A stretch of DNA of 64,000 nucleotides, taken from Basidiobolus meristosporus CBS 931.73 (Eukaryota; Fungi; Basidiobolomycota). The notes under the pieces are model-generated. The model searched no databases and was not told the origin of the DNA. It saw nothing but the letters and a program-made list of their open reading frames with translations. Position 1 is the first letter of the stretch; each line of letters starts with the position of its first letter. Of this stretch, positions 26,268 through 64,000 are shown piece by piece. Location of the stretch: assembly GCA_002104905.1 (NCBI GenBank), contig MCFE01000463.1:6971-70970 (forward strand). The letters are read 5' to 3'. The position numbers were made by a program, and so were the translations under genes.

Positions 26268-26279
26268 GGTTATGAGCCC
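26268..26279 (+). promoter_or_regulatory. Primer-binding site, half-tRNA-iMet type
   Basis: ggttatgagccc directly after the LTR. This is the Ty5/Drosophila copia type PBS complementary to the iMet anticodon region; family E has the same PBS at 14561. Confidence 0.85.
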
Positions 26280-26303
26280 CGATTGCCTTAATCTATTCTA
26301 AAG

Positions 26304-37656: not shown

Positions 37657-38389
37657 AGACTTGTTCCGTTGGATAGTGCCACATTGAGCCATGAGTGCCA
37701 AATGATGCCATAGTGTGCCAGAGAGGCCCAGTGAGCCTCTACCTGGCCACAGAGTGTGAAACATAGCTCTGCATCTTCATGGACAGCAGCCCCTGTGTTT
37801 CACCCATTGTGTCTGAGAAAATCCATTTTTTGACCTTTTTTTTGGATCAATGTTGTGCAGGATGTGTTTGAGCACAAGCAGAATGACAATATGCATCTGG
37901 TACTCAATACCCATGGCACTCTGAATCTAGCTCCTGTAGCTTGTATCATGTCACAAAAATGAATGGCACTATCTTGGTCCACTGGCACTATCTGGCACTA
38001 TATTTAAATATTAGCCCTAAAGTAAGAGCTATACAAAGCACTTATAGTGCCAGATAGTGCCAGTGGACCAAGATAGTGCCATTCATTTTTGTGACATGAT
38101 ACAAGCTACAGGAGCTAGATTCAGAGTGCCATGGGTATTGAGTACCAGATGCATATCTTCAGTTCTCCTGTGCTCTTACACATCCTGAGCTACATTGATC
38201 CACAAAAAAAGGTCAAAAAATGGATTTTCTCCTGCGCAATGGGTGAAACACAGGGGCTGCTATCCATGAAGATGCAGAGCTATGTTTCACACTCTGTGGC
38301 CAGGTAGAGGCTCACTTGGCCTCTCTGGCACACTATGGCATCATTTGGCACTCATGGCTCAATGTGGCACTATCCAACGGAACAAGTCT
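37657..38389. mobile_element. Fold-back MITE (733 bp) inserted in the family F RT
   Basis: TSD ata/ata; removing it restores NLKIDTDY|IKETIETLL. Arms 37657-38002 and 38043-38389. Confidence 0.95.
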
Positions 38390-41408: not shown

Positions 41409-42890
41409 AATACCATGTAAGAGTATGAATGCTGCTTTTATATTCAGTTAATCACAATGCAAAGACCATGCAATCTGCTTGTTCTCCCAATCACTTTCAT
41501 ATCCCCAAGATTCTTACAACAGACTATGAGCCCCAGGCTGTCTCTCTCTGCAATGTTTACAGCTGCTATCACTGGGATTTTCCCTCTGCTGAAAAATTGG
41601 ATGGATCCAACAACCAGTTGAGGAAGGTGAAGATGAAGATGCTGCTGCAAGAAAGAGACCATTGGGATATTGTCATGAGAGAAGAATGACCTCCTAAAAT
41701 GTGGGAGTGGAAGCCTTAAGGTACCAGAAGAAAGAGCAAAGTGCCTTTAACTGCATTTGCCTTAATGTTAAAGGCAAATTGCTAATTCAATGCTCAAGAG
41801 CAAAGATGGCAAAGAATACCTGGAAGGCATTAGAAGACACCTACCAGTCATACTCAGCTGATAAGAAAAGTTATCTTAGACAGAAGTTCCTTACTGCAAG
41901 TTGCTGCTAGCAGAGGAAATGAAAAATCTGATTCTTAGATTTCCCTGCTGGTGGATGAGAGCAAATATGTGGGCATACCACCACTAATGAGGATGTGATG
42001 TTACCATCCTGAATAGCCTGACCAAGGGGTCTTAGGGATTTGTATCAGCCCTATAGTCCATAACTGAAGATTTGACCTTTAACTATGTATGTATAAGGCT
42101 CATGGATGAAGAATCAAGAAAATCAAGCACCAACTAGAAAGAAGCCAAAAGTGCTTTAATAAGCAAAAATAGCAAACAAAGAAGGTATCCAAGACTCTGT
42201 GAAGGCAGAAGCAAACTGCTTTGCAACCACTGTAAAAGGAAAGGACACACAGCAGACCAGTGCACTAAAAAGAAAGATGTTCAGCAGAAAAAGCCTGAAT
42301 ATAGAAATGCCGCAACAGCTGAAGACACACTGTTCATATCTGCACTAAATTTCACCACAAACAAGAATTCTCAGACATGGCATATTGACTCTGAAGCATC
42401 TCAACACTTTGCACACCAAAAAGACCTCTTGGCCAGTATTAAAAAATTCCAATTAAGAACGTTCTCATGGGTGGCAATAGAACACTTCATACAGTGGGAG
42501 TAAGAACTAACCAAGTAAGTGTTATAAGCAGCAAAGGAAGTCACACACTTACATTCAAAAAAGCACCCTATGTACCAGAAATAGCACAGAACCTACTATC
42601 TGCAAGCAATGCCATAGCAGAAGGACTCAGTTTCAGCTTTGACAAATCTGGGTGCAGCATAACCAATCAAACTGGTGCACATGTTGCATTAGGTATCAAA
42701 GATCAGAATCTATCCAAGTTGACATATATTTTATCATACCTGGCAGCCAATATACAAAACTTGAATGAAGAAACACCAATGCTTTGGCACAGGAGATTTG
42801 GACACATCAATTTTGGTTATTTGTGCAAATGATCAGAGATTGGCTTATTTCCAGAGTAATGGCTAATCCCCAATTTAATCTGGAGAGCGG

Positions 42891-43960
42891 TGTGGTGGTG
42901 TATAAGTCCAAGGGAGAGATACGTCCAACACTTCTCAAGTGTTTTGTGTGTGGGGTGTTCACTGGGTGCAATAACCTCTGGCAAAAGCTTGCTAGGAATA
43001 CTTGGGTTCTGTCTCTAATCTAATGTGAAGGGGAATAAAGCCACAAGCTTGTCAAGGGAAAACTATTGAGCTACAATCCCCAACTTGGTTGGCGTCTTAA
43101 CAAAAGTATGTGCTGGGTTCAGCGTCCTTTGAGATGACAATGTACTAAAGCTTCCAAAGTCAAAACAACTGTAAACTCCACCAGCAGGGACTTGATAAGA
43201 ATGCAGCTGTGGTCAATAGTTACAAAGACAGAAAAGTATCTTTGCCTGTACAAGAACAAACTTGGGAAAGAAACAAATATGATAAAAGATACTTACTCTG
43301 AGTATTCCTCACAAGTAGTGCCTCCAAGGTCAGTTGGCTGTCAGCGCGGTTTCCTGGGAGTGTCCTGTGGTCTAGGGTTGGAAGTTCAGGTAGCAGCAGG
43401 TAGCAGTGATCACACTAATCAACAAGTTGGTATATTGATAAAAGGGATGATGATTTATTGTTGAGGGATAGCCTCCCTTATATACTTTTCTTACTGGCTA
43501 AGTGATTACTAATCATGGTGTTCCAGAAGGTTCCAGATATCAATATAAATCTCAATGACATCAGAATGATTTAAGAATGTTCTAAGTAGGTGCCAGAAGG
43601 TTCTCAGAGGCACAGCACATCCAACCAATCAGGAATCAGTATTCTGAAACCTGTGTAACATGGGGATACCATATATGGTATGGAAATGGTAGGGATGGTG
43701 ACACGGGTTGATCATGTGTCACGGGTACTGGCGCGGGTACTTGCCTAATATAGAAGTACTTATAGCTAGTAATCTTACATAAAGTGAGGGGTAACTTATG
43801 CAATAAGGTAAGCAGGTGTGATAGTCATCTGGCTTATGGGATAGTACTGATTGGGTAAGACAAATGGGATAAAACTATATAAGTGTAGTAGAGATATAGG
43901 GAAGTAGAAAATAAGGGAATGAGCACATCTGTCAGTGGGTGTCACTGTCACCCCACTACA
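42891..43960 (-). repeat. Solo LTR of family A
   Basis: 1070 bp; perfect TSD gcgg (42887-42890 and 43961-43964). Confidence 0.95.
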
Positions 43961-44638: not shown

Positions 44639-46930
44639 TGACTTGTTCCATTGAACTGTGCCAGGGTGCATGGTGCAATCTGCGGTCTCTAAGAAGAATT
44701 TGGCATAATATTGTAGCTACCTGTAGGCAGGATTGCTCTTGAACAATTTTGCACCATGTGGGACAAACTTGCACACTATTGCACAATCTGACACAATGAG
44801 GCTGACACAAATGATTGCACCAACTTGTAATGCTTGCATCATATGTGCAATTGGATACCATTATTATAGTAGGTAAAATCTAGTATCTGGATATAATTCT
44901 TTAATATATATGAAAATAAATGTATATGACACTATATACTACACTGATACTTACCATTTTTATTATTGTCACTCCAATTGGATGGTATCTCAGTGGTTAA
45001 TTGGTCCAAAAGTATCCTTAAGCTGTCAGCAATGGCATGGCCCTTGGCTAAGTTCAATGTGATGCTGCTTATTGATGCACCTTGGCCCACTCCAATGGAC
45101 TTGTGTAGGATGAGTCCTATGTATATAGCTCTTGGAAGCCACTTAGCTCTACTAATATATCACATAATACATTAGTAATTTGAGGTAAAAACTCATTCAA
45201 ATATCTTTGGTTCCCAAAGTCATTGCACAAATGAATGCATCCAGCCTGCACTGAGCAAACTGCGTGCAAAATTGTTCCTGCACAGCTTCCTCATCATATC
45301 CCCTGACTCTCAGCTCATTCTTTATTTAAATACTTGTCTTGCTATATATCTTCTTACATACATCCACTGGCATCTTGATGTAGAACTCATGCCACAGCTT
45401 TCTACTCAGGTTCTTCCATCTCTGTCCACTCTCCAAGGTATTTAGTTCTGCTAGATTAGTCAGTAGTGCCAGAATATCTGTATGAAGGCTCAACATAGAC
45501 ACTTGGGCCATACTGAGATCATTTGGCAAGAACTCAAACAAATCCAACATTGACATTTCTGGTCCGGACCGTGCTTGTGAGCAGGGGGATGGGTTTTGTC
45601 TGGGTTGTACCAAAGATAAGTTGAGACTTGGTATAGAGACCATAGTGACAGATTGGAATACTTATATAGTAGTGTTTTGGCATCAACCTGGTCTTATATG
45701 AAATATATATGAAAACTAATGAGATTTTTGAATTTTCCATATATTAGACTTGTTCCATTGTATAGTGCCACATTGAGCCATGGGTGCCAAATGATACCAT
45801 AATGTGCCAAGGAGGCCAAGTGAGCCTAAGCCTGGCCACAGAGTGTGAAACACAGCTCTTCATCTTCATGCAAAGCAACCCCTGTGTCTTACCCACTGTG
45901 TTGGAGAAAATCCATTTTTTGCCCTTTTTTTTTGGATCAATGTTGTGCATGATGCATAAGTGCACAGAAGAATTGAAGACATGCACCTGGTATTCAATAC
46001 CCATGGCACTCTAAATCTAGCTCCTGTAGCTTGTATGATGTCACAAAAATGCATGGCACTCTCTTGGTCCACTGGTACTATCTGGCACTGCAAGTGCTTT
46101 GTATAGGTCTTACTTTAGGGCTAATATTTAAATATTGTGCCAGATGGTACCAGTGGACCTAGATAGTCCCATGCATTTTTGTGACATGATACAAGCTACA
46201 GGAGCTAGATTCAGAGTGCCATGGGTATTGAATACCAGGTGCATGTCTTCAGTCCTTCTGTCCTCTTACACATCCTGCACAACACTGATCCAAAAAAAAG
46301 GTCAACAAATGGATTTTCTCCAACACAGTGGGTGAAACACAGGGGCTACTTTGCATGAAGATGCAGAGCTATGTTTCACACCCTGGGGCCAAGTTTAAGT
46401 CTGCTTTGCCTCTCTGGCACGCAATGGCACTATATGGCATTCATGGCTCAATGTGGCACTACCCAACGGAACAAGTCTATTATGCATGATGCATCTTAGA
46501 TTGCTTTGACACGGATTGGATCACATCAATTTCAGATTTCCTATTTTATTATAGACTTGTGAGTAAAACATCAATAAGAATATCAAGTCATTGTTTGAGG
46601 ATGATTTTTGCAACATAATGATGGGATACATGGCAATTGATGGAAATTTAATCATAATGCATCAAGAATCAGATAAATAAATCTGATCACGCTAAATCAA
46701 TTCAAATCACCTCAGCCCAATCATCTACCAATTGTAATATGACTTACTCATCTGAATGGTCTTTTCTCATCAATCTCATCACTACCACAGGATTTCCTTT
46801 TGACACACAAGAGGAGATACCAGGTACTGTGGACCATCTACCTTAATCTACTCAAGGAAATCCCTTGTTAAGCTTCTCTGCTATTATAAGAACTATTGCC
46901 CTACAAGGTTTCCTCCCACCATGCATGGCA
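44639..46930 (+). mobile_element. PHIS transposon copy 2 (left TIR, deleted ORF1, transposase N-terminus), right-truncated
   Basis: aat|tgacttgttcc at 44639; 45030-45745 matches 810-1690 and 46480-46930 matches 1690-2150. Confidence 0.8.
45746..46478. mobile_element. Fold-back MITE (733 bp) inserted in its own parent family
   Basis: TSD att/att; the empty site ccatatattatg is at 1681-1692 in copy 1. Confidence 0.93.
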
Positions 46931-46934
46931 ACAA

Positions 46935-48965
46935 AAGTCCTACAAAAGCTGTAGATGTGTCAAGTTGGGATTAGAGATCTGCCTTGGGATAAAGGTTCCT
47001 ATAATGTCCACAAATGACTCCCAGTGCTTCCAATGCACTCTTAGCAGGAATGGCCTCAGAATGCCACTTGAGCAAATGCATATTCAGCTCAGCCAGTCTT
47101 TGCATTTGTATTGTTGCATATGAGTATGAATATCAGTTGGAGCATGTGAGAAGTACTTAGGGTAGTGGATGCTCTGTAATATCTTGCCAGTCTTTCAGAT
47201 TTCTCTGGTACTTCAAAGGGCCCATTCAGCTTGAAATGCCCATGTACAACTTAGTCATCAGTATAGTAATATTGTTGAAAGTCAAATGCATTGCTCCCAG
47301 TGGAAAGCTTTTGCTCCAACAGATACTCTCTATCTAAAGTATCACTAGTTTCCAATTGATTCCATATTCTGGCCAATGATTTATAGCTTGCCAACTTTGC
47401 TGCAATTGCATGCTGACTTCTGTCCATTCTGCCGGTGGGAAGATGATGTTCTTAGTGTTGGTGTTTGGGTAATAATAATGTATGTAAGTTATGGAGAAAA
47501 TCCCCTGGATCTCACATGTTTGACCTCAATACCATCCATTGTGCCTAGAAAAGCCAGCTATCTTGCTGATGGCTGGGGTTAGCCTAATGCAGAAACCAAT
47601 AAGCACTTTGACATGAGGGTCATTTACTGTTTTCCTGCTGGAAAGTAGACAAAATTTTTCCCGCAATGGATACAGGGAGCTATCCTGGTTGGATTGTGAT
47701 TTATGCCCAGATACCATTGAGACTACCATCAGATTCCATATAAATAAATATTAAGATGATCCCATCAAGAAGTCATCACAAAGTTAAAGTCCCATGACTA
47801 AAAGGTATTGATCCTGTCAGGACATCATCCAGAGAATGTTGAGAAATAGTTGCCCCCCAGATTTCACAAAAAACTTGTTCAAAATTTTTCATCACAATAA
47901 TGTATAGGTGGCTTTTGATTGGTTCCCTGCCAATTTGTTCACTTTCTGATCCCAGACACTCTATTGCCTCCTACATTTGTGTGCATTGATTGGCTATTAC
48001 CTCTTTTTCACACTCCTCACTTCATAACTCAACTGTTTCTCTTACTTTCCATGCTTACAAATTGATTTACTTTTGTTGAAGCTTCAGTTGCACCTCAATT
48101 ACCAATTGTATTGACCTATACAAGTCCTTATACCCTACACCTACCTTAAGCCCCACCCCACACTTATAAAGTAACTTCATTAAAATCCACCACTCAATAA
48201 GTATTTCTGCTATATTGCTCTGGTTCCACCACTTTGTCAGGAACCCATCTGCTTTATGCCACTGTTCACTCACTGCTTCTCACACATCCTGGTTCTCAGC
48301 CAGCACTGCAAGGTCCAGCCCCTTATCTGCCAGTCTTTGCAATAAATCCTTGCAATATTCCAGTGTGTTCTCTTGAGCACTGCTCTTGAAGAAGTGCTGC
48401 AACCTTTTTGTGTGCTTATTAATGTTCCAAAACTCCACTGAAGGCATTGTGATAGTCATTCAAGTTCTTGACATTGTAGCCTTGTCTGTCAGTGGGATCT
48501 CCACTCTGTCAACAATGGAGGATATGGAGGGTGTAGTAGACAAACTGCCTTTTTCAGCAAACTCATCTACCTTGATAGCATGTAGCTGAGCTGCCTGTGC
48601 TTCCAACTATTGTGAAAACAGCTGCTTGCTTGTTGGTAATTCTTCTTGGCTATGATGGGATTCAGTCTGTTCTGGGCTTGCAGTGTTAATTGGCAAGAAC
48701 TGCAGTTTTTTTTGCATGCCTTCCTGTCTCAGACTTGGGTAGATGTTTTTCCCTTTACCTTTTCCTTTATCACCACCAGGTCTTTCACTGCTACTTTGTC
48801 TGAGTGCTTCTTGTATAGAACTATGCTTTCTCCTGGATAAATTCTGCTCTGACGCATATGATTTGGCCTGCTTGCCCATTGCTGGCACTCTTCTGGCAAC
48901 CAGACATTTCTTTTCCGCTTGTTTTGAGCTCTCAACCATAGTTTCATGGGCTTCTCTAAAAGCGG
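46935..48965 (-). pseudogene. CACTA transposase fragment plus fragment of the second ORF
   Basis: 46935-47730 is colinear with 3560-3808, 25130-25898 and 30590; 48240-48960 is the reverse complement of 32350-33170. Confidence 0.7.
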
Positions 48966-49956
48966 TGTAGTGGGGTGACAGTGACACCCACTGACAGATG
49001 TGCTCATTCCCTTATTTTCTACTTCCCTATATATCTACTACACTTATATAGTTTTATCCCATTTGTCTTACCCAATCAGTACTATCCCATAAGCCAGTTG
49101 ACTATCACACCTGCTTACCTTATTGCATAAGTTACCCCTCACTTTATGTAAGATTACTAGCTATAAGTACTTCTATATTAGGCAAGTACCTGTGCCAGCA
49201 CCCGTGACACATGATCAACCCGTGTCACCATCCCTACCATTTCCATACCATATATGGTATCCCCATGTTACACAGGTTTCAGAATACTGATTCCTGATTG
49301 GTTGGATGTGCTGTGCCTCTTAGAACCTTCCGGCACCTACTTAGAACATTCTTAAGTCATTCTGATGTCATTAAGATTTCTATTGATATCCGGAACCTTC
49401 TGGAGCACCATGATTAGTAATCACTTAGCCAGTGAGAAAAGTATATAAGGGAGGCTATCCCTCTACAATAAATTGTCATCCCTTTTATCAATATACCAAC
49501 TTGTTGATTAGTGTGATCACTGCTACCTGCTGCTACCTGAACTTCCAACCCCAGACCACAGGACACTCCCAGGAAACTGCGCTAACAGCCAACTGACTTT
49601 GGAGGCACTACTTGTGAGGAATACTCAGAGTAGGTATCTTTTATCATATTTGTTTCTTTCCCAAGTTTGTTCTTGTAAAGGCAAAGATACTTTTCTGTCT
49701 TTGTAACTATTGACCACAGCTGCATTCTTATCAAGTCCCTGCTGGTGGAGTTTACAGTTGTTTTGACTTTGGAAGCTTTAGTACATTGTCATCTCAAAGG
49801 ATGCTGAACCCAGCACATACTTTTTTTAAGACGCCAACCATGTTGGGGATTGTAGCTCAATAGTTTTCCCTTGACAAGCTTGTGGCTTTATTCCCCTTCA
49901 CATTAGATTAGAGACAGAACCCAAGTATTCCTAGCAAGCTATTGCCAGAGGTTATT

Positions 49957-50690
49957 AGACTTGTTCCGTTGGATAGTGCCACATTGAGCCATGAGTGCCA
50001 TATAGTGCCACAGTGTGCCTGAGAGTTATAGCAGACCTAAACTTGGCCACAGAGTGTGGCATAGAGCTCTTCATATTCATGCAAAGCAGCTCCTGTGTTT
50101 CACCTACTGTGCAGGAGAAAATCAATTTTTTAACCTTTTTTTTGGGATCAAAATTGTGCATGACATAAAAGAGCACAGACAGACTGAAGATATGCATCTG
50201 GTACACAATACCCATGGCACTCTAAATCTAGCCCCACAGGCTTGTAGCATGTCACAAAAATGCATGGCACTATCTTGGTCCACTGGTACTGTCTGGCACT
50301 ATAAGTGCTTTGTATAGGTTCTACTTTAGGGCTAATATTTAAATATAGTGCCAGATAGTACCAGTGGACCAAGATAGTGCCACGCATTTTTGTGACATGC
50401 TACAAGCCTGTGGGGCTAGATTTAGAGTGCCATGGGTATTGTGTACCAGATGCATATCTTCAGTCTGTCTGTGCTCTTTTATGTCATGCACAATTTTGAT
50501 CCCAAGAAAAAGGTTAAAAAATTGATTTTCTCCTGCACAGTAGGTGAAACACAGGAGCTGCTTTGCATAAATATGCAGAACTATATGTCACACTCTGTGG
50601 CCAAGTTTAGGTCTGCTATGACTCTCAGGCACACTATGGCACTATTTGGCACTCATGGCTCAATGTGGCACTATCCAACGGAACAAGTCT
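49957..50690. mobile_element. Fold-back MITE (734 bp) in the A1 5' LTR
   Basis: Perfect terminal agacttgttccgttggatagtgcc on both ends; flanks att/atg; absent from the other A LTRs. Confidence 0.93.
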
Positions 50691-53600
50691 ATGGCACCCA
50701 GTGAACACCCCACACACAAAACACTTGAGAAGTGTTGGACGTATCTCTCCCTTGGACTTATACACCACCACAAAATTGGCACCCAACATGGGGGGTTCAT
50801 ACAAGCTCCCTAGGACCCAACAAGATTTACCTGAAGATTTGAGCTGTTATCCACCTATTTAAAAGAGACTACCAATATTACCAAGATTACAACACCAACC
50901 TACCTGCCCAAAATGAACTCTATGCCATTACCACTCTCACATGGAGCCACACAGTTTGATGGAAAGAATGTGGAAAGCTTCATATTCAAATGGGAGAAGC
51001 TCTGCAAGATGTGTAGCCTATCTGAACAAGAAATGGCTGAAGACTTCCCCTACTACTGCACCAATGATATTACCACTAAGCTTCTCAGACAAGGAGACAT
51101 TCTCACTGACTGGGCCTTAATGAAGACCTACCTACAGACCAAGTATGGTAGACCCCAGATATACTATGGAATTGAAGACCTCAGGCACTTTGGAAGAACT
51201 GGACTTTCCAAGCTACCACTTGAAGAGCTCATTCAACAGTATGAAGATATGGCCAAGCCACTCCTAGAGTCCCAGGCTATAACTGAGTTTACCATGACAC
51301 TTTACCTTGCACAAGGGCTTCCCCAGGACTTGGCAAGGAAAGTTGACTTACATGCAGCCAAGGATGACAAGTCTGGCATTCCTTGCTTTGCAGAGATGAA
51401 ATGTGTTCTCCTAGAGGCAAAGCAAACTTCTACCTTTATGAGACTCCTGACATCTAATCTGCCAGACCAGTCAACCAAGGAGCCAAGGAGTGCTGCTGCT
51501 GACAATCAGACCTACGCTACCGACAGAATTGACCAACTTGCTGAACAGCTACAAAAGCTAGCCCTTAAGATTAATGGCTCAGCTCAGGTTGCTACTGAGG
51601 GACAAACACCTTTGCCCAGGCACTGCATCTGGTGTGACTCTACTCAGCATGCCAGACAAGAATGCTCAGAGCTTAGTCAGCTACTCAGAGAAGGAGCAGC
51701 ACAGTTTGATGCTGATGGAATGCTTGCTGACAAGGAAGGAAGAAGGATTCCCACTAATTTCCAAAGAGGAGGGATGAGAGCCCTTTTCCAGAAATCTGAC
51801 TCAGCACCCAGAAAGCTTACTGCTGATGCCCCTATTGGGACTCATAAATTGAATCCAAGCAGCCCTGACAACAGACAATATGAAGTTGATGCCTTTGCTA
51901 CCAAAAGACACCTCCCTGAAGAACCTGCCAAACCCATCCTTAGAAAACCACAATTCGAAGAACCTGAAGTTGTTATTGACAAGAGGCCTAGTATGCTGCC
52001 CACCCAAGATCCATTGCCTCACTTTCAGATGACCTCAAAGATAGCAAGCTACTCAAGCCCTCAACTGATTACTGAGAAGCTGCTGAAGCAGAACCTCACT
52101 TTGTTGGTTGGAGAAATCATGAGTGTATCCCCATCTGTTAGGAAGACCTTTGATGAGCAGCTTAGAACAAGACAACAAGCTGTTGAACATATGGACACTC
52201 ATATAATTCAGACAAACCGTGAAGACCACCAAAAGGATGACAACACTACTGAATATAAGACCTTTTACTCAGTTGCAACTGCTGTGGTGAAAGGGTATAT
52301 ATATGATGACCCTGTTGACTGCCATATTGACAGTGGCTCAGAGATTTGTGTTATGCCACTAGACTTCTGGAAGACACTTAAAAGCAAGGAGCTACTGCCT
52401 GTTGATAGAGATATTGGATGGAACATGACCGATGCAAACTCAGGATCTAGTCCACTCTATGGTGTAGTACACAAGTTTCCTATTGAGGTACAAGGAATCA
52501 AGGTCTGGCTTCCCCTCTTCATCTGCCAGAAGGCAAACTTTGACCTTCTGCTAGGTAGACCATGGGAAACCAGTACTAAGGCTACAACCACCAACTATTC
52601 CAATGGGTCAGTATGGTACACCATACAAGGATCCAATCCAGGACTACAGTCAACCTTCTGCGGTGTAACACCCAACAATAAGAGGACACATACTGCTTGC
52701 CAGAAGGCACATCTTGTTATGAAAGAAGATGAAGAGCCTGACAATATACACCCCAACATTTGGAGCTGCTCATTAGGTATACAGGAGCAAACAGCTATGG
52801 TTTGAACAAAATACAAGACAGTAGAACAGAAGATTAGACCATCACTTACCCCACTGACTGATGGATCTTGACCCGCTGATTACATTAGACCACCAGAAGA
52901 AACACCAGATGATATACGACTTACACCTGAGAGACTTGAGCAACTTATCATTGGTGATGGAAACCTAACACCAGAGGAGATACTATTATTCAAGGAGACC
53001 TTGAAAAGGCATGATAAGGTCTTCTGATATAATGACAAGGAGATGGGACTCTTAAAGACATTGGTTGAAAAACCCATCAAGATTCATACAGTGCCCCACA
53101 CACCCTGGTCATTTAAGCCTTACCCACTGCCCAGAGGACTCCAAGCTGATGTGCATGACCTACTTAAGAAGAAGATAGAAGCCGGTATCCTAGAACCTTG
53201 CCATGGACCCTATGCTAACAGATGGTTTGTGACCAAAAAGAAGAATGGAAAGCTCCGATTCATTCAAGACATGCAACCTGCAAATGCTGTCACTATCAGA
53301 GATGCTGCTATACCTCCATCCATTGATGACTTTGCAGAAAGCTTTAGTGGCCACTCCATCTACTCAACATATGATCTCTACTCAGGATATGACCAGATCC
53401 CCCTTGATGAAACATCAAGAGATATGTTTGCGCTACAGACACCATTTGGACTGTTAAGGATGACAAGACTCAGCCAAGGGGCTACAAACTCTGTGGCCCA
53501 GTTCCAGAGATGCATGGTAAACGTGCTGTATCAGTTTATACCTGAGAGACTTGCTGTCTTTGTGGATGACATAGGCATCAAAGGACCAAAATTCCAAGAC

Positions 53601-54861
53601 ACCACTGAAGTTATGCCTGGAATAAGAAAGTTTGTCTATGACCATATTACAGACAATGATGCTATATTGGGAGCCATTGAAGAAGCTGGACTCACCATCA
53701 GTGGTGAGAAAAGCAGCTTTGGTGTATCAGAGATATCCATTGTTGGACAAAAATGCAACACCTTTGGTTGTTCACCTGGAGACTCCAAGACACAAAAGAT
53801 ATGCAACTGGCCTACCCCCACAAATCTCACACAAGCTTGTGGCTTTGTGGCTGCTTGTGGGTTCTTTAGGATCTGGATCCCAAGATTTTCTGAGATAGCA
53901 GAACCAATTTACCAACTACAGAGAAAGAACACCCCATTTATCTGGGGAGAAGAGCAAGAAGAAGCCATGCAATTACTGAAAGAGGCCTCAGTATCTCCAC
54001 CAGTTTTAAGACCTCTTGACTATCAAAACACTGAATGCCCACCTATTTTGACAGTGGATGCAAGCCCCATAGGAGCTGGAGCACTACTTGGACAAGATGA
54101 TGAAGATGGCAACCACTATGCCTGCAGATATGAGAGCTGCCTATTCTCTCCTAGAGAACAAAGATACTCACAGATTAAGAGAGAACTACTAGGAGTTGTG
54201 AAGATGCTGAGGAAACTGAAGTCACAACTCTACATGACACATTTTATCCTGGAGACAGATGCCAAGCCACTTATAGGAGTGATCAACAAGCCTGACCTAC
54301 CTGATGATGCCACAAACCGATGGATGGCATGGCTGAAAATGTTTGACTTTGAGGTCAAACATATCCCTGGCAAGACAAATGTTGTGGCTGATGCACTCTC
54401 CAGGAAGGGACCACAATTATTTGAAGACTTGGACCCTCACTTTGATGATATTGTTGATGCAGAGATCCGACAGATTGCCATCAAAGACCAAGAGAGAACT
54501 ACCTGGAGTCTGATCAAGTAATATCTAAGGACACTTAAGAAATCTAGTTGGATGGATATTCAGGAGTTTAGAAAACTCAGGAAGAAGGCACACCACTACT
54601 ATCTTAAAGATGATCTTCTCTTTAAGCAAGTGAAGCCTGGACTTATGCCAAGAAGAATAGTCACTACCCCTCAAGAGCAACTGAACATCATGACAAGTAT
54701 CCACCAAGGAGAACCAGGAGGACATAGAGGACAAGAAGCCACATACAACACTACAGCTCAGAGGTACTACTGGGAAAACATGTATTATGATATCCAATAC
54801 TTTGTTGAGTCATGTGTAGCCTGCCAGAAGAGATCCTCCAAGTGTTATGAAGAACCACCGC

Positions 54862-57800
54862 TGTGGTGGTGTAGAGGTACTCCTGGGAGAAGCTACACAA
54901 CTCAAGGTGTGTGAGGTGTCTGATGGGTGCAATAACCTCTGTGTCTAAACTGCTGGTGTCTTTGTCAATATGTCACTATGGTAAAAGCTCCTGCTTCTTT
55001 AGCTCCCTAGGTGCTCCAAGTGTCTCCAAAGGCCTCTGTGTGTCTTGTGCACTACCCTGAAAAGCTCCTTGATGGCAGGTCTTAGATGTACTGTTGAAGG
55101 CAGGTGCAGTGATCAACTGCTAATCAATAAGGTAGAAGTGTTACTGATAGAAGGGATGATTTATTGATGAGGAATTGCTTTCCCTTAAATACTTTTCCTG
55201 ATTGCCAAGTGATTACTAATGACAAGGTTCTAGAAGATTCTAGGTATCAGTGGAATTCTTGATGACATCACTATGAGCTAAAAATATGCCAAGAATGTCC
55301 TGGAAGGTTCTAAAGGGCACAGCACTCTCAACCAATCAGGAATCAGTAGTCTGAAACCTGTGCAACATAGAAATACCATATATGGTATTGAAATGGTAGA
55401 GATGGTAACACAGACCTAGGTCATGTGTCACGGGTACTGACGCGGGTACTTGCCTTATATAGATACATCTACTGATCACAAAGCTGAATAACATCTGGGA
55501 TAACTAATGCTAATAACTAATCAGGGTAAACATCATATGGGGATAATACTGATAATATGGGCAAAAGAAGAATGGGATAATACTGATAAGATAAAATATG
55601 GATAAGTATATCATAATGACTATATGAATAAACTTGTCTGTGGGAGGTATGTTTACCCTACCACATCCACCCCCCACTTGAGCTAAAAAGTTTCAGGGAA
55701 CTTTTTAGCTAACCACTGTAAGTTTGGAGAACAAAGTGCTCTCTCAGTCTTCCTCAATGAAGCCACCTGTCCTTTCTTGAGATAGAAATCTACATGATGT
55801 CATTGATCGGATATTGTTTGAGTCCACACCACAGAAGGTTGCTGTTAGTCCTGGGCTCTCTGAGTATATAGTATACCATGCTGAACCATCTGGGTAGTTC
55901 ACTGCAGTTGCTCTTGCTTTTACCTCCCATGGTCTTCCAAGAAGTAATTCAAAGTTAGCCTTTGCACATATGAATACTGGGATCTCATGGGGTATTCCTT
56001 CAATGATGAGAGGGAAGCTGTGAATAATTCCTAAAAGCTTTGATTGCCCTGAGTTGGCATCCTTCATGCTCCAATTGATATTGGTGTCTATGGGCAATAA
56101 GTCTTTGCATGGTAGTTGTTTCCAAGCCTCCAAAGGCATCACACATATCTCAGATCCACTGTCAATATGACATAGGATTTCTTGATTATGCACAGTTCCT
56201 GTAGTTGTTGCAGTTGCCACTGAGTAGTAGTGTTTCTGGCTTTGATGCAGCTTACTGATATTTTGGCTTCCTTGAACTGTCCTGACCTGGTTGCCTTGAG
56301 TTGATTCAATTGGATGCTTTCTTATTCTGATATGCTCATCCAGAGTCTTTCTTACAGATGGTGATACACTGAGTAGCTCTCCAACCTTGATTGATATGTT
56401 GCTTCCTAGTATATGACTTGTCAGAGCCTCTGGGGTACCATTTTGCTTGACTCTAGGCTGCATGTGGTAGTTGTTGGCCTTGGCAGACTCTTGTAAAATT
56501 AATGGGGGTGATGCTTTCTTCTCAATCACAACTTCTGGCTCACATCTTGGTACTTTTGTTGCTGGGCCTGGATTAGCCATTTTTTCAGGATGGTGTCTCT
56601 TTGAAGCATAAATTGAAGCTATATGATCTTGGGCCTCTCTGGGGTCCTCATAGTCAAAGTTCAGAACTTCAGCTGGATCAAAGTAGCCAGGATCTTCTTC
56701 GCCATGAAGGTGAACCTTTCTTGTATGAGAGGTGACTTGCTTGTAGTGAACTCTCATTCCTCCTTGTCCAAATGCTGTGGATAATTTGTCACCATGCTTA
56801 CTGACTATGTATCCCTGAGGACTATATAGGACATCACCTGTGGATAGTAATGACTGAAGCTCTTGGCAATTTCTCTTGGAATGGTTGGCAGAGTCACACC
56901 ACATGCATGTATATTTGACTTCTTTCTCTACTGGCTTCTGACCATATGCTTTGCTGGCAAGTAGCAAAGAGAGTTTCTCTAGTTGCTGTGTCAGCTCCTG
57001 AATTTGAGTGCTTTGATTGCTGGGATTAAGTATGTCTTGGCTATCTTGGTTTTGTCCTGGGCTTGAGAGAAGCTTTCTGATTGGTGAGGTTTCTTCAGGG
57101 ACAAGTAGAATCTGCTTAGCTAACTGAAATGCAGGCAGTGAACTCATAGCTTTCACAGTAGGATTGTTTTCAATCCTTCTCACCAGGCCTTCTGGTAGTG
57201 CTCTGAGCAGATAGGCAGATAAAGTCAGATCAGTGATAATGCCTTGGGCTTTCAGTGACTCTCCAATTTGCTCAAGGCCACTCAAGTATTCTTTCAATGG
57301 TAGCAGCTTAAACTTGCTATAAGCAAAGTTCTCCAAGTCTTTAAGTGTGTAGTCAACTTGTCTCTCTCCATATTCATCAATCAAGTAGCTCTTCAAGAGG
57401 GTCCAATTTGTCAGCAGATCATTTCTTTCATATAAAGAGAGCATGATCTCATCAGTGCTGTAGGGGGGCATCTCTTCAGCCATAATGGCCTCAGGTATTT
57501 TGTGGGCTCTGCAGAAAAGCTCCCACCTCTTGATGAAAGCTTTAACTTTGGTTCCATCAAAGAAAGGAGTTCCTTGCATTCCTGGTAAAGGTAGATCCAT
57601 GGTCTTGATAATTTGTTCTTTCTTAAGTCTTCTAGGGGCAGTTCAGTCAAACCCCCCACGTTGGGTGCCAAATATGTGGTGGTGTAGAGGTACTCCTGGG
57701 AGAAGCTACACAACTCAAGGTGTGTGAGGTGTCTGATGGGTGCAATAACCTCTGTGTCTAAACTGCTGGTGTCTTTGTCAATATGTCACTATGGTAAAAG

Positions 57801-58478
57801 CTCCTGCTTCTTTAGCTCCCTAGGTGCTCCAAGTGTCTCCAAAGGCCTCTGTGTGTCTTGTGCACTACCCTGAAAAGCTCCTTGATGGCAGGTCTTAGAT
57901 GTACTGTTGAAGGCAGGTGCAGTGATCAACTGCTAATCAATAAGGTAGAAGTGTTACTGATAGAAGGGATGATTTATTGATGAGGGATTGCTTTCCCTTA
58001 AATACTTTTCCTGATTGCCAAGTGATTACTAATGACAAGGTTCTAGAAGATTCTAGGTATCAGTGGAATTCTTGATGACATCACTATGAGCTAAAAATAT
58101 GCCAAGAATGTCCTGGAAGGTTCTAAAGGGCACAGCACTCTCAACCAATCAGGAATCAGTAGTCTGAAACCTGTGCAACATAGAAATACCATATATGGTA
58201 TTGAAATGGTAGAGATGGTAACACAGACCTAGGTCATGTGTCACGGGTACTGACGCGGGTACTTGCCTTATATAGATACATCTACTGATCACAAAGCTGA
58301 ATAACATCTGGGATAACTAATGCTAATAACTAATCAGGGTAAACATCATATGGGGATAATACTGATAATATGGGCAAAAGAAGAATGGGATAATACTGAT
58401 AAGATAAAATATGGATAAGTATATCATAATGACTATATGAATAAACTTGTCTGTGGGAGGTATGTTTACCCTACCACA
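54862..58478 (-). mobile_element. Element B: non-autonomous LTR retroelement encoding only Gag-protease (3617 bp)
   Basis: 804-bp LTRs (54862-55665 and 57675-58478) with one mismatch seen; TSD ccgc; PBS 57653-57670; PPT 55666-55678; single ORF. Confidence 0.95.
55744..57600 (-). CDS. gag: Element B Gag-protease, 618 aa
   Basis: Intact ORF with capsid-like N-terminus, CMWCDSANHSKRNC zinc knuckle, CHIDSGSEIC aspartic protease and LLLGRPW; the stop is about 65 bp before the PPT. Confidence 0.93.
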   Translation of the reverse strand: MDLPLPGMQGTPFFDGTKVKAFIKRWELFCRAHKIPEAIMAEEMPPYSTDEIMLSLYERNDLLTNWTLLKSYLIDEYGERQVDYTLKDLENFAYSKFKLLPLKEYLSGLEQIGESLKAQGIITDLTLSAYLLRALPEGLVRRIENNPTVKAMSSLPAFQLAKQILLVPEETSPIRKLLSSPGQNQDSQDILNPSNQSTQIQELTQQLEKLSLLLASKAYGQKPVEKEVKYTCMWCDSANHSKRNCQELQSLLSTGDVLYSPQGYIVSKHGDKLSTAFGQGGMRVHYKQVTSHTRKVHLHGEEDPGYFDPAEVLNFDYEDPREAQDHIASIYASKRHHPEKMANPGPATKVPRCEPEVVIEKKASPPLILQESAKANNYHMQPRVKQNGTPEALTSHILGSNISIKVGELLSVSPSVRKTLDEHIRIRKHPIESTQGNQVRTVQGSQNISKLHQSQKHYYSVATATTTGTVHNQEILCHIDSGSEICVMPLEAWKQLPCKDLLPIDTNINWSMKDANSGQSKLLGIIHSFPLIIEGIPHEIPVFICAKANFELLLGRPWEVKARATAVNYPDGSAWYTIYSESPGLTATFCGVDSNNIRSMTSCRFLSQERTGGFIEED

Positions 58479-59425
58479 CCGCATCCTACTTACACAATCT
58501 GTCTATGGCAAAAGGTTAGTATTGACCTTGTCCACATGCCAACAGCTGGATCAAAAAAGTACCTGATTGTTGCTAGAGATGACCTTAGTGGATGGGCAGA
58601 GGCTCAAGCCTTGCCCAACAACAAGAGCCATACCATATGGAGATTTATACTTGAAGACATCATCTGCAGATTTGGCTGCATCCAACAGTTTGTTGCTGAC
58701 AGAGGAGAGATGACATCCCAAATGATCCAGGAGTTGTGCTCAAAGTACAAGATACACATAGCTTTCACAACAGCTTACCACCCTGAAGCCAATGGAATGA
58801 TAGAGAGAGGACATGGACCATTGGTGAACTCTCTTGTCAAGATTTGTGAGAATAACACAACACTGTGGCCACAGCAATTACATCTAGCACTCTGGGCAGA
58901 TAGATTTACTACCAAGAGAACAATTGGATTATTGCCATTCAAGCTACTCTATGGACATGACTGCATACTACCAGTTGAGTTAAACACAGTCACTTGGAAC
59001 TCATTGAATTGGAGATCCAATATGCAGACTGAAGACCTCCTTGCAACTTGCATACAGCAACTTGATCACCATGACTTGAATATTAGCAGAGCTGCTGAAC
59101 AACTTAAGGATACACAACTAAAGAACAAGGTGCCCTTTGACAAATCACACCCAACAAGACCAAAACCACTATCACTAGGAGACCCAGTATTACTCTATGA
59201 TTCTACCTTGGACAAGCAATGGAGTTGGAAGTTTGACAACAAATGGACTGGCCCCTACCTCATTTCCAAAGTGATTGGAAATGGAAGTTATTACATATCT
59301 GAGCTTGACAACACCCAGTTGAGAGCACCAGTTGCTGGAAATTGACTTAGTTATTCAAGCATAGGAATTTCGCACATCAAGATTAGTTTGCTTTGACCCA
59401 AGTTCAAAGCTGAGAGGGGGGTGGA

Positions 59426-60496
59426 TGTAGTGGGGTGACAGTGACACCCACTGACAGATGGGCTCATTCCCTTATTTTCTATTTCCCTATATCTCTACTA
59501 CACTTATATAGTTTTATCCCATTTGTCTTACCCAATCAGTACTATCCCATAAGCCAGTTGACTATCACACCTGCTTACCTTATTGCATAAGTTACCCCTC
59601 ACTTTATGTAAGATTACTAGTTACAAGTGCTTCTATATTAGGCAAGTACCCGCGCCAGTACCCGTGACACATGATCAACCCGTGTCACCATCCCTACCAT
59701 TTCCATACCATATATGGTATCCCCATGTTACACAGGTTTCAGAATACTGATTCCTGATTGGTTGGATGTGCTGTGCCTCTTAGAACCTTCCGGCACCTAC
59801 TTAGAACATTCTTAGGTCATTCTGATGTCATTAAGATTTCTATTGAACTCCGGAACCTTCTGGAACACCATGATTAGTAATCACTTAGCCAGTGAAGAAA
59901 AGTATATAAGGGAGGCTATCCCTCAACAATAAATCATCATCCCTTTTATCAATATACCGACTTGTTGATTAGTGTGATCACTGCTACCTGCTGCTACCTG
60001 AACTTCCAACCCTAGACCACAGGACACTCCCAGGAAACCGCGCTGACAGCCAACTGACCTTGGAGGCACTACTTGTGAGGAATACTCAGAGTAGGTATCT
60101 TTTATTATATTTGATTCTTTCCCAAGTTTGTTCTTGTACAGGCAAAGATATTTTTCTGTCTTTGTAACTATTGACCAAAGCTGCATTCTTATCAAGTCCC
60201 TGCTGGTGGAGTTTACAGTTGTTTTGACTTTGGAAGCTTTAGTACATTGTCATCTCAAAGGACGCTGAACCCAGCACATACTTTTGTTAAGACGCCAACT
60301 AAGTTGGGGATTGTAGCTCAATAGTTTTCCCTTGACAAGCTTGTGGCTTAATTCCCCTTCACATTAGATTAGAGACAGAACCCAAGTATTCCTAGCAAGC
60401 TTTTGACAGAGGTTATTACACCCAGTGAACACCCCACACACAAAACACTTGAGAAGTGTTGGACGTATCTCTCCCTTGGACCTATACACCACCACA
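59426..60496 (+). repeat. Family A LTR shared by tandem units A1 and A2
   Basis: Preceded by the PPT and followed by the PBS, with no TSD. Confidence 0.95.
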
Positions 60497-60500
60497 TATT

Positions 60501-60518
60501 TGGCACCCAACGTGGGGG
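60501..60518 (+). promoter_or_regulatory. PBS, tRNA-Lys(CUU) type
   Basis: tggcacccaacgtggggg matches 16 of 18 positions of the canonical Lys1,2 PBS TGGCGCCCAACGTGGGGC; identical in element B. Confidence 0.75.
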
Positions 60519-60636
60519 GTTCATACAAGCTCCCTAGGACCCAACAAGATTTACCTGAAGATTTGAGCTGTTATCCACCTATTGAAAAGAGACTACCGAT
60601 ATTACAAAGATTACAACACCAACCTACCTGCCCAAC

Positions 60637-63600
60637 ATGAACTCTATGCCACTACCACTCTCACATGGAGCCCCACAGTTTGATGGAAAGAATGTGGAAA
60701 GCTTCATATTCAAATGGGAGAAGCTCTGCAAGATGTGCAGTCTATCTGAACAAGAAATGGCTGAAGACTTCCCCTACTACTGCACCGATGATATTACCAC
60801 TAAGCTTCTCAGACAAGGAGACATTCTCACTGACTGGGCCTTAATGAAGACCTACCTACAGACCGAGTATGGTAGACCCCAGATATACTATGGAATTGAA
60901 GATCTCAGGCACTTTGGAAGAACTGGACTTTCCAAGCTACCACTTGAAGAGTTCATTCAACAGTATGAAGATATGGCCAAGCCACTCCTAGAGTCCCAGG
61001 CTATAACTGAGTTTACCATGACACTTTACCTTGCACAAGGGCTTCCCCAGGACTTGGCAAGGAAAGTTGACTTACATGCAGCCAAGGATGACAAGTCTGG
61101 CATTCCTTGCTTTGCAGAGATGAAACGTGTTCTCCTAGAGGCAAAGCAAACTTCTACCTTTATGAGACTCCTGACATCTAATCTGCCAGACCAGTCAACC
61201 AAGGAGCCAAGGAGTGCTGCTGCTGACAATCAGACCTACACTACCGACAGAATTGACCAACTTGCTGAACAGTTACAAAAGCTAGCCCTCAAGATTAATG
61301 GCTCAGCTGAGGTTCCTACTGAGGGACAAACACCTTTGCCCAGGCACTGCATCTGGTGTGACTCTACTCAGCATGCCAGACAAGAATGCTCAGAGCTTAG
61401 TCAGCTACTCAGAGAAGGAGCAGTACAGTTTGATGCTGATGGAATGCTTGCTGACAAGGAAGGAAGAAGGATTCCCACTAATTTCCGAAGAGGAGAGATG
61501 AGAGCCCTTTTCCATAAATCTGACTCAGCAACCAGAAAGATTACTGTTGATGCCCCTATTGGAACTCATAAAGTGAATCCAAGCAGCCCTGACCACAGAC
61601 AATATGAAGTTGATGCCTTTGCTACCAAAAGACACCTCCCTGAAGAACCTGCCAAGCCCATCCTTAGAAGACCACGCTTTGAAGAACCTGAAGTTGTTAT
61701 TGACAAGAGGCCTAGTATGCTGCCCACCCAAGATCCATTGCCTCACTTTCAGATGACCTCAAAGATAGCAAGCTACTCAAGCCCTCAACTGATTACTGAG
61801 AAGCTGCTGAAGCAGAACCTCACTTTGTCGGTTGGAGAAATCATGAGTGTATCCCCATCTGTTAGGAAGACCTTTGATGAGCAGCTTAGAACAAGACGAC
61901 AAGCTGTTGAACATATGGACACCCATATTATTCACACAAGCCATGAAGACCACCAAAAAGATGACAACACTACTGAGTATAAGACCTTTTACTCAGTTGC
62001 AACTGCTGTGGTGAAAGGATATATATATGATGACCCTGTTGACTGCCATATTGACAGTGGCTCAGAGATTTGTGTTATGCCGCTAGACTTCTGGAAGACA
62101 CTTAGAAGTAAGGAGCTACTGCCTGTTGATAGAGATATTGGATGGAACATGACTGATGCAAACTCAGGATCTAGTTCACTCTACGGTGTAGTGCACAAGT
62201 TCCCTATTGAGGTACAAGGAATCAAGGTCTGGCTTCCCCTCTTCATCTGCCAGAAGGCAAACTTTGACCTTCTGCTAGGTAGACCATGGGAAACCAGTAC
62301 TAAGGCTACAACTACCAACTATTCCGATGGGTCAGTATGGTACACCATACAAGGATCCAATCCAGGACTACAGTCAACCTTCTGTGGTGTAACACCCAAC
62401 AATAAGAGGACACATACTGCTTGCCAGAAGACACATCTTGTTATGGAAGAAGATGAAGAGCCTGACAATATACACCCCAACATTTGGAGCTGCTCATTAG
62501 GTATACAGGAGCAAACAGCTATGGTTCGAACAAAATACAAGACAGTAGAACAGAAGATTAGACCATCACTTACACCTTTGACTGATGGATCCCGACCTGC
62601 TGATTACATTAGACCACCAGAAGAAACACCAGATGATACACAACTTACACCTGAGAGACTTAAGCAACTTATCATTGGTGATGGAAACCTTACACCAGAG
62701 GAGATACTATTATTTAAGGAGACCTTGAAAAGGCATGATAAGGTCTTCTCATATAATGACAAGGAGATGGGACTCTTAAAGACATTGGTTGAAAAACCCA
62801 TCAAGATTCATACAGTGCCCCACACACCCTGGTCATTTAAGCCTTACCCACTGCCCAGAGGACTCCAAGCTGATGTGCATGACCTACTTAAGAAGAAGAT
62901 AGAAGCTGGTATCCTAGAACCTTGCCATGGGCCCTATGCTAACAGATGGTTTGTAACCAAAAAGAAGAATGGAAAGCTCCAATTCATTCAAGACATGCAA
63001 CCTGCAAATGCTGTCACTATCAGAGATGCTGCTATACCTCCATCTATTGATGACTTTGCAGAAAGCTTTAGTGGCCACTCCATCTACTCAACATACGATC
63101 TCTACTCAGGATATGACCAGATTCCCCTTGATGAGACATCAAGAGATATGTTTGCACTACAGACACCATTTGGACTATTAAGGATGACAAGACTCAGCCA
63201 AGGGGCTACAAACTCCGTGGCTCAGTTCCAGAGATGCATGGTGAATGTGCTATACCAGTTTATACCTGAGAAACTTGCTGTCTTTGTGGATGACATAGGC
63301 ATCAAAGGATCAAAATTCCGGGACACCACTGAAGTTATGCCTGGAGTAAGAAAGTTTGTCTATGACCATATTGCAGACAATGATGCCATATTAGGAGCCA
63401 TTGAAGAAGCTGGACTCACCATCAGTGGTGAGAAAAGCAGCTTTGGTGTATCAGAGATATCCATTGTTGGACAAAAATGCAACACCTTTGGTCGCTCACC
63501 TGGAGACTCCAAGACACAAAAGATATGCAACTGGCCTACCCCCACAAATCTAACACAAGCTCGTGGCTTTGTGGCAGCTTGTGGGTTCTTTAGGATCTGG

Positions 63601-64000
63601 ATCCCAAGATTTTCTGAGATAGCAGAACCAATCTACCGACTACAGAGAAAGAATACCCCATTTATCTGGGGAGAAGAGCAAGAAGAAGCCATGCAATTAC
63701 TGAAAGAGGCCTTAGTATCTCCACCAGTTCTAAGACCTCTTGACTATCAAAACACTGAATGCCCACCTATTTTGACAGTGGATGCAAGCCCCATAGGAGC
63801 TGGAGCACTACTTGGACAAGATGATGAAGATGGCAACCGCTATGCCTGCAGATATGAGAGCTGCCTATTCTCTCCTAGAGAACAAAGATACTCACAGATT
63901 AAGAGAGAACTACTAGGAGTTGTGAAGATGCTGAGGAAACTGAAGTCACAACTCTACATGACACATTTTATCCTGGAGACAGATGCCAAGCCACTTATAG
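60637..64000 (+). CDS. gag-pol: A2 gag-pol, apparently one open frame running off the window end
   Basis: Colinear with A1. The A1 stops are sense codons here (CGA at 62527, CGA, TCA). The ORF track lists no stop-terminated ORF in this frame, consistent with an open run of about 1121 codons. Confidence 0.85.
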   Translation, partial: MNSMPLPLSHGAPQFDGKNVESFIFKWEKLCKMCSLSEQEMAEDFPYYCTDDITTKLLRQGDILTDWALMKTYLQTEYGRPQIYYGIEDLRHFGRTGLSKLPLEEFIQQYEDMAKPLLESQAITEFTMTLYLAQGLPQDLARKVDLHAAKDDKSGIPCFAEMKRVLLEAKQTSTFMRLLTSNLPDQSTKEPRSAAADNQTYTTDRIDQLAEQLQKLALKINGSAEVPTEGQTPLPRHCIWCDSTQHARQECSELSQLLREGAVQFDADGMLADKEGRRIPTNFRRGEMRALFHKSDSATRKITVDAPIGTHKVNPSSPDHRQYEVDAFATKRHLPEEPAKPILRRPRFEEPEVVIDKRPSMLPTQDPLPHFQMTSKIASYSSPQLITEKLLKQNLTLSVGEIMSVSPSVRKTFDEQLRTRRQAVEHMDTHIIHTSHEDHQKDDNTTEYKTFYSVATAVVKGYIYDDPVDCHIDSGSEICVMPLDFWKTLRSKELLPVDRDIGWNMTDANSGSSSLYGVVHKFPIEVQGIKVWLPLFICQKANFDLLLGRPWETSTKATTTNYSDGSVWYTIQGSNPGLQSTFCGVTPNNKRTHTACQKTHLVMEEDEEPDNIHPNIWSCSLGIQEQTAMVRTKYKTVEQKIRPSLTPLTDGSRPADYIRPPEETPDDTQLTPERLKQLIIGDGNLTPEEILLFKETLKRHDKVFSYNDKEMGLLKTLVEKPIKIHTVPHTPWSFKPYPLPRGLQADVHDLLKKKIEAGILEPCHGPYANRWFVTKKKNGKLQFIQDMQPANAVTIRDAAIPPSIDDFAESFSGHSIYSTYDLYSGYDQIPLDETSRDMFALQTPFGLLRMTRLSQGATNSVAQFQRCMVNVLYQFIPEKLAVFVDDIGIKGSKFRDTTEVMPGVRKFVYDHIADNDAILGAIEEAGLTISGEKSSFGVSEISIVGQKCNTFGRSPGDSKTQKICNWPTPTNLTQARGFVAACGFFRIWIPRFSEIAEPIYRLQRKNTPFIWGEEQEEAMQLLKEALVSPPVLRPLDYQNTECPPILTVDASPIGAGALLGQDDEDGNRYACRYESCLFSPREQRYSQIKRELLGVVKMLRKLKSQLYMTHFILETDAKPLI

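Follow-up and report, generated by a model that had tools for sequence, protein, structure and literature searches.

How can a retrotransposon that encodes a Gag protein and a protease, and no enzyme for reverse transcription or integration, have inserted itself recently into a genome? This question is raised by element B, a complete long terminal repeat (LTR) retrotransposon of 3617 bp that lies on the minus strand at 54862–58478 of a 64,000-nucleotide stretch of DNA from the fungus Basidiobolus meristosporus CBS 931.73 (contig MCFE01000463.1), hereafter the window. B sits antisense inside copy A1 of a second family, A, which is of the Ty3/gypsy type and has the order Gag, protease (PR), reverse transcriptase (RT), ribonuclease H (RNase H, RH) and integrase (IN); a further copy, A2, follows A1 directly. 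A preliminary description made from the sequence had proposed that B is an old parasite that supplies its own capsid and protease and borrows the RT and integrase of A. Our analysis leads us to a related, more guarded answer: B is probably a non-autonomous ("semi-autonomous") element of the Ty3/gypsy type that keeps a Gag-PR module and depends on an autonomous relative for mobilisation in trans. Below we present the evidence for this reading, and then ask whether A itself, a closer sibling of B, or some mixture of lineages best accounts for it.

Structure and recent insertion of element B

Read along its own strand, B begins after the upstream copy of the target-site duplication (TSD; 58479–58482, GCGG) with a 5' LTR of 804 bp (57675–58478), which has TG..CA termini, TATA-like boxes at LTR positions 204–213 and 474–483, and an AATAAA signal at about position 502. 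The primer-binding site (PBS), 17 nt long, starts 4 nt past this LTR (57654–57670). It is followed by a single intact open reading frame (ORF) of 618 aa (57600–55744), a Gag-protease polyprotein. From its stop codon to the 3' LTR there are 78 nt, at the end of which the core of the polypurine tract (PPT), GGGGGGTGGA (55666–55675), abuts the LTR; the same sequence is found in A1 (59416–59425). The 3' LTR, again 804 bp, occupies 54862–55665 by self-comparison, and the downstream copy of the TSD (54858–54861) completes a perfect 4-bp repeat that reads GCGG on the element strand. The primer is presumably a Lys-CTT-like tRNA; a tRNA scan found no tRNA genes in the window, and an Rfam scan of the window gave no match.

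These features (paired LTRs ending in TG..CA, a short TSD, a PBS at the 5' LTR and a PPT at the 3' LTR) are those of an LTR retrotransposon, and the ORF aligns collinearly with the Gag-PR of A, in whose pol RT is followed by RNase H and then by an H2C2-rve integrase, as in the Ty3/gypsy type. Neither Pfam nor tblastn with the RT and integrase of A detected RT, RNase H or integrase in B: Pfam gave only a weak DUF4100 match on the B ORF, while the neighbouring A ORFs yielded RT, RNase H and integrase domains. The layout given in the preliminary description, LTR-PBS-618-aa ORF-PPT-LTR with no RT, RNase H or integrase, is therefore borne out by Pfam, tblastn and self-comparison, with the strand corrected to minus. 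With a coding capacity limited to Gag and protease, B cannot copy itself.

Nevertheless, B has inserted very recently, since its LTRs are equal at 803 of 804 sites (the sole mismatch, found by self-comparison of the window, is at LTR position 493) and its TSD is clean; the single difference, the intact ORF and the recent move had all been correctly recognised at the outset. The solo B LTR reported at 4987 is also real. Located at 4987–5789 (minus strand), it shares 95.5% identity with the young B and sits within the pol of a third gypsy element; we classify it as a solo LTR because collinear pol of that other element lies on both of its flanks. Its flanking duplication is decayed (CCAC/CCAT). 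The window thus holds one full B element and one solo B LTR.

Insertion site and copies of family A

B interrupts the integrase of A1 (48961–60496, plus strand), as had been described: it lies between the H2C2 zinc finger (54552–54861) and the catalytic core (58483–59345), 22 nt after the zinc-finger match, and the A1 reading frame agrees on both sides of it. The accompanying claim that B had thereby knocked out a helper copy is doubtful. A1 contains four in-frame stops (52803, 52869, 53025 and 54519), all of which are absent from A2; its 5' LTR is split by an inverted-repeat element of ~740 bp at 49957–50694; and its LTR pair differs by 3.4%, compared with 0.12% for B. From these lesions A1 was probably already dead when B landed. 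In a quick maximum-likelihood (ML) tree of Gag-PR, the A1 tip is about ten times longer than the A2 tip.

A2 (59426–64000, plus strand) is of the type that is the candidate helper. Its frame is open for 1121 codons, through Gag, PR, RT and RNase H, to the end of the window, and because it is open throughout, we take family A to encode one continuous polyprotein. A natural stop between PR and RT in this family was considered and rejected: the stop is a lesion of A1 only, and A2 reads openly from Gag into RT. The 630-aa Gag-PR ORF of A1 is accordingly a by-product of decay, for it ends at that A1-specific stop.

The LTR at 59426–60496 is both the 3' LTR of A1 and the 5' LTR of A2, so that the two copies form a tandem LTR-internal-LTR-internal array (48961–64000). 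Their internal regions are 97.0% identical and align without gaps, with a dN/dS of 0.22. A1 and A2 thus diverged largely under selection before they were joined, and the joining was probably by recombination of two elements. LTR fragments at 83–690 and 19122–19775, 87–90% identical to the A LTR, represent an older or sister A-like subfamily.

The Gag-protease protein of B

Aligned over 612 aa (E 3e-151), the protein encoded by B is 38% identical to, and collinear with, the first 600 residues of the polyprotein of family A. The short peptide comparisons by which the preliminary description had set the B protein at a distance from A Gag-PR were correct. To examine its fold, we used an AlphaFold model built from 42 relatives, with a mean predicted local distance difference test (pLDDT) score of 77 and values >90 in an N-terminal helical domain and a C-terminal beta domain. 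Between these domains, a CCHC zinc knuckle of the form C-X2-C-X4-H-X4-C (aa 232–245; 56866–56907, minus strand, as for all features of the ORF) is kept in nearly all relatives.

The C-terminal domain (aa ~460–600; 55801–56223) is a retropepsin. It carries the motifs DSG at 480–482 and LLGRPW at 552–558, and Foldseek matches it to the retroviral-protease domain of DDI1 and to HIV-1 protease with template-modelling (TM) scores of 0.76–0.79 and E down to 8e-8, so that a D-S/T-G site is found within a retropepsin fold; the Pfam protease models remained below threshold on the B ORF itself. The N-terminal domain (aa 14–170; 57091–57561) is predicted to be all-helical and capsid-like, with pLDDT >85. 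When it was modelled alone, its best matches in the PDB were the capsids of dArc1, Arc, PNMA2 and Copia, all of them weak (E 0.03–2, TM 0.37–0.48; Foldseek), and a PDB sequence search with the B ORF gave no match. A two-lobed helical capsid fold is thus no more than likely. The label Gag-protease is justified for this ORF.

Nor does the gene appear decayed. Of 125 columns that are conserved in the alignment of outside relatives, B has the conserved residue in 83, A2 in 81 and A1 in 76. Together with the collinearity, the intact motifs and the fold, this makes the Gag-PR gene of B apparently functional.

Divergence of A and B

How closely, then, is B related to A? The quick ML tree of Gag-PR, an analysis that the preliminary description had itself suggested, places A and B as sisters with a Shimodaira–Hasegawa-like approximate likelihood ratio test (SH-aLRT) support of 100, and the nearest outside clade consists of Harpellales fungi. 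From their common node the branch lengths are 0.98 to B and 0.64 to A. Between the two Gag-PR sequences the proportion of synonymous differences (pS) is 0.75, which is saturated, the nonsynonymous distance (dN) is 0.60, and third codon positions are 37.5% identical. Because of this saturation and the 38% amino acid identity, B is not a fresh deletion of A, in agreement with what had been proposed; instead, we infer from the sequences that A and B are old sister lineages.

A homologue search without length restriction, which reaches longer fusions, found 670 matches to the B ORF among 1.8 billion representative proteins. The best, from Kickxellomycotina fungi and uncultured contigs, are 27–29% identical, and the relatives of the protein include Smittium, Furculomyces and Dispira besides uncultured contigs. 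A length-limited search with the B ORF gave no match, nor did look-ups for sequences identical to the B ORF or to the window's Copia ORF, and metagenome scans with the LTR/PBS junction pattern and with the B protein both came back empty. The RT of A is 49–51% identical to sequences from Smittium, the liverwort Riccia and uncultured contigs. One relative (L002) carries Gag-PR and RT-RH-IN on two separate ORFs, with the modules in the same order as in A; since Gag-PR forms an ORF of its own there, we regard it as a natural module in the A/B clade.

Cis signals and target sites shared with family A

In contrast to the synonymous sites of gag-PR, parts of the non-coding sequence of B remain strikingly close to A. 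Positions 185–535 of the B LTR are 72–90% identical to the A LTR (~350 bp, roughly 77% overall), with a Kimura two-parameter (K2P) distance of 0.29 over 347 nt (57675–58478 versus 59426–60496), so that this core is far better conserved than the saturated synonymous sites. Within it lie the two TATA-like boxes, a CCAAT motif in inverted orientation and the AATAAA signal. The final 60–85 nt of U5 can also be aligned between the two LTRs, and the extra 270 bp of the A LTR are accounted for by an insertion or deletion inside U5. The earlier statement that the LTRs share only short blocks is thus incorrect, and to speak of an LTR lineage of B's own is to overstate the case: the LTRs are homologous, with a well-aligned core.

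At the signals used in reverse transcription and integration the agreement anticipated by the preliminary description is complete. The LTR/PBS junction (PBS with flanks) is identical between B and A2 at 25/25 nt, and between B and A the PPT with the LTR start at 13/13 nt and the 3' LTR end at 11/11 nt. The PBS and PPT motifs occur nowhere in the window beyond A1, A2 and B, and the remaining non-coding sequence of B gives no alignment with A. That functional cis modules outlast synonymous sites in this way could stem from prolonged selection to work with the same machinery in trans, or from recombination and LTR capture.

The target sites provide a further link. GCGG is duplicated at B (54858–54861/58479–58482) and at a solo A LTR at 6613–7686 (6609–6612/7687–7690), and it forms the left flank of A1 (48957–48960). 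Its reverse complement, CCGC, is duplicated at a second solo A LTR at 42888–43960 (42887–42890/43961–43964), and the CCAC/CCAT at the older solo B LTR is the product expected from CpG decay of CCGC. Every A and B insertion that can be dated thus has GCGG or its complement as TSD. GCGG and CCGC together account for 57 of 63997 positions in the window, where the observed/expected ratio of CpG is 0.11; because they are so rare, the probability that the TSDs agree by chance is negligible. The young Copia element of the window has a different TSD, the 5-bp GAGAC. These sites suggest that A and B insert by means of a sequence-specific integrase, and the shared rare TSD points to integration of B by an A-type integrase with the specificity of A's own. 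The sharing of GCGG would be equally compatible with an autonomous sibling family, as yet unseen, whose integrase is related.

A T downstream is common to the four target sites where it is readable. A preference for integrase genes as targets was considered and set aside, there being two cases in a window that consists almost entirely of transposons. Sequence-specific integration into CG-rich 4-bp targets is known from the insect errantiviruses ZAM and Tirant. A and B resemble these in having a 4-bp duplication and a fixed CG-containing sequence; the motif (GCGG) and the clade are different, and five sites are seen here.

Source of the enzymes that mobilise B

The mechanism that we favour is as follows. 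B RNA would be transcribed from the element's own LTR and translated into Gag-PR, which would process itself; the RNA would then be reverse-transcribed from a tRNA primer, and the product integrated, by enzymes that an autonomous relative provides in trans. Family A, or an element closely related to it, is the best candidate in view for this helper, because the PBS junction, the PPT core, the LTR termini, including the 3' LTR end, and the unusual GCGG target are all the same in B. For packaging there are two alternatives: B Gag may co-assemble with a foreign Gag-Pol, or B RNA may ride in helper particles. We consider mobilisation in trans of this kind the best-founded account of B and somewhat probable overall. 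As for the original proposal that the lender is A itself, the shared cis signals and GCGG target speak for it, and an unseen autonomous sibling family would serve as well.

Several observations weigh against this account. With only 38% identity between the Gag proteins of B and A, co-assembly of B Gag with the Gag-Pol of A is uncertain. The 3' untranslated region of B cannot be aligned to A except for ~19 nt at the PPT, so a deletion junction is untraceable. The B LTR is 50–77% identical to that of A, below the level of classic partner pairs, and this lower similarity fits a closer, unseen autonomous partner. Nor need the GCGG target be peculiar to A, since related integrases throughout a clade could just as well share it. 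Finally, there is a single internal B copy from which to judge selection among B copies and the age of the loss of pol.

The strongest competing explanation is that B arose recently, by internal deletion, from an autonomous family of B type located outside the window. That family would be both the parent of B and the source of its RT and integrase, and the divergence between A and B would be that of two autonomous sister families. We regard this as a serious possibility, although we lean away from it. Synonymous saturation and 38% identity date the lineages and not the loss of pol; conservation of Gag-PR at the level of the autonomous copy A2 is what a recent deletion would predict; the B LTR is only moderately similar to that of A; and non-autonomous derivatives arise often and repeatedly from autonomous elements (PMC13570524). 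On the other hand, there is no B-type pol in the window, where the other RT and integrase remnants are 24–31% identical to A by tblastn. Likewise, neither the 1.8 billion cluster representatives nor the metagenome scans yielded a B-like protein with more than ~30% identity, which says little, since the host genome is absent from those data. The solo B LTR, 4.6% diverged, indicates that the LTR lineage is not brand new, although it does not reveal what that former copy contained.

A bolder form of mobilisation in trans comes close to the original description: B may be a long-lived satellite lineage that lacked pol during most of its past, while purifying selection maintained a capsid and a protease of its own, and that co-evolves with the RT and GCGG integrase of A in its cis signals only (promoter/R core, LTR ends, PBS and PPT). 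It would then be to retrotransposons what a satellite virus that encodes its own coat protein is to viruses. We advance this only tentatively and think it on the unlikely side. The divergence from A does not by itself imply long-term parasitism, because the age of a lineage is not the age of its pol loss.

Could the contrast between coding and non-coding sequence have arisen by recombination instead? In that case B would be a mosaic: template switching between RNAs packaged together would have attached an LTR core, U5 end and PBS related to those of A to a deeply diverged gag-PR. Such an origin could be combined with either mobilisation in trans or a recent deletion. LTRs normally diverge faster than coding sequence, and here the LTR core (K2P 0.29 over 347 nt) and the PBS junction (25/25) stand against a saturated gag-PR and otherwise unalignable non-coding sequence. 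However, the conserved stretches coincide with functional modules, namely the TATA-like boxes, AATAAA, LTR ends, PBS and PPT, and long-term selection on shared cis signals gives the same pattern with no recombination. We therefore consider a mosaic origin rather doubtful.

It is highly improbable that B Gag-PR serves mainly to interfere with A, as the truncated Gag p22 does for Ty1, and not to build B particles. The capsid C-terminal domain (CA-CTD) restriction factor of Ty1 Gag is among the weak fold matches of the B N-terminal domain, and B Gag is related to A Gag yet diverged from it, so that an analogy is all that speaks for this idea; B, by contrast, has transposed recently with all of its cis signals kept, which is the behaviour of a mobile parasite. 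That the arrangement is a segmental duplication or an assembly artefact can be dismissed, for we found no point in its favour, and it conflicts with the exact TG..CA boundaries, the 4-bp TSD, the correctly placed PBS and PPT, the consistent frame of the A1 integrase across B, and an independent solo B LTR 50 kb away.

Sequence context of the window

The window is packed with recently active copies of Ty3/gypsy, Copia and DNA transposons. The third, distant gypsy element lies within 4281–8872, with RT/RNase H at 4281–4981 and an integrase zinc finger at 6257–6421; its pol hosts the solo A LTR at 6613–7686 as well as the solo B LTR, and a 229-bp direct repeat (4047–4274 and 8645–8872, 91% identical) brackets the region. 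A young Ty1/copia element occupies 25896–30585, with 373-bp LTRs that differ by one mismatch, the TSD GAGAC, and an intact ORF of 1305 aa (26304–30221) of the order Gag-PR-IN-RT. An older LTR of the same family is present at 23914–24281, and a homologue search with the Copia polyprotein found no relative above 47% identity. The ORF at 2180–2830 has a DDE_Tnp_4 (Harbinger/PIF-type) transposase domain. The ~740-bp inverted-repeat element in the 5' LTR of A1 is a foldback or long terminal-inverted-repeat element that matches its own reverse complement over its full length; self-comparison placed this copy at 49953–50692 and found three further copies (11415–12153, 37652–38391 and 45741–46482), and the four copies show 80–88% identity.

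Base composition in the window is strongly biased: the observed/expected ratios are 0.11 for CpG, 1.39 for TpG, 1.32 for CpA and 0.80 for TpA, and CAG and CTG are not depleted. The young B has 6 CpGs in 2.8 kb. To judge by these ratios, the depletion bears the signature of cytosine methylation at CpG only, and not of plant-type CHG methylation. Repeat-induced point mutation (RIP) of the ascomycete kind was rejected as a cause of the base bias, as CpG alone is depleted and TpA shows no increase.

Relation to known systems

Dasheng/RIRE2 and Zeon/Cinful are two-component LTR systems: the non-autonomous member retains cis signals matching those of an autonomous partner, and its mobilisation takes place in trans. 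B resembles such elements in this respect; in the classic pairs, however, the LTRs are far more alike than those of B and A. The BARE-2/BARE-1 system shows the opposite division of labour: BARE-2 lacks a functional Gag and borrows it (PMC4350172), whereas B has a Gag of its own.

B is closer to the elements that retain Gag. TR-GAG elements (Chaparro et al. 2015) are shorter than 4 kb, have the structure LTR-PBS-single ORF-PPT-LTR, and keep Gag but have no RT, RNase H or integrase; they were selected for having no similarity to protease (PMC4350172). B is like them in its length (3617 bp), LTRs, PBS, PPT and single Gag ORF, and unlike them in its clear retropepsin domain, so that it falls outside the strict definition and within the broader Gag/PROT class. 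In wheat, the Fatima subfamilies RLC_famc1.4 and 1.5 encode Gag and protease only and have proliferated, with RT and integrase presumed to come from an autonomous subfamily (PMC6097303), and 28 GAG/PROT-only non-autonomous LTR families are described from sugar beet (PMC13570524). These plant families share with B the LTRs, the PBS and the PPT, and like B they encode nothing beyond Gag and protease, so that RT, RNase H and integrase are all missing. They also differ from it: Fatima is Ty1/copia and its non-autonomous subfamilies are close to the autonomous one, while B is of the Ty3/gypsy type and is saturated at synonymous sites relative to the sole candidate helper in view; moreover, the host of B shows a CpG-only depletion that seems unlike that of a plant. 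Literature searches for fungal elements with Gag-PR only returned no specific case, one on DUF4100 returned no paper, and one on helper systems found nothing. B is thus a further case of a described class of Gag/protease-only elements and not a new kind.

Within that class, B stands out for its intactness, for how deeply it has diverged from the one candidate partner, and for the sequence-specific target that the two share: it is an unusually clean and young Gag-protease-only element beside a candidate helper. If it is true that all B copies, across ages, are without pol, B would represent a parasite that supplies its own capsid and has persisted stably over the long term; if not, it is a deletion derivative of the ordinary sort. 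With saturated coding sequence, conserved cis modules and a rare target in common with A, B offers a test case for how a non-autonomous LTR element remains compatible with its partner.

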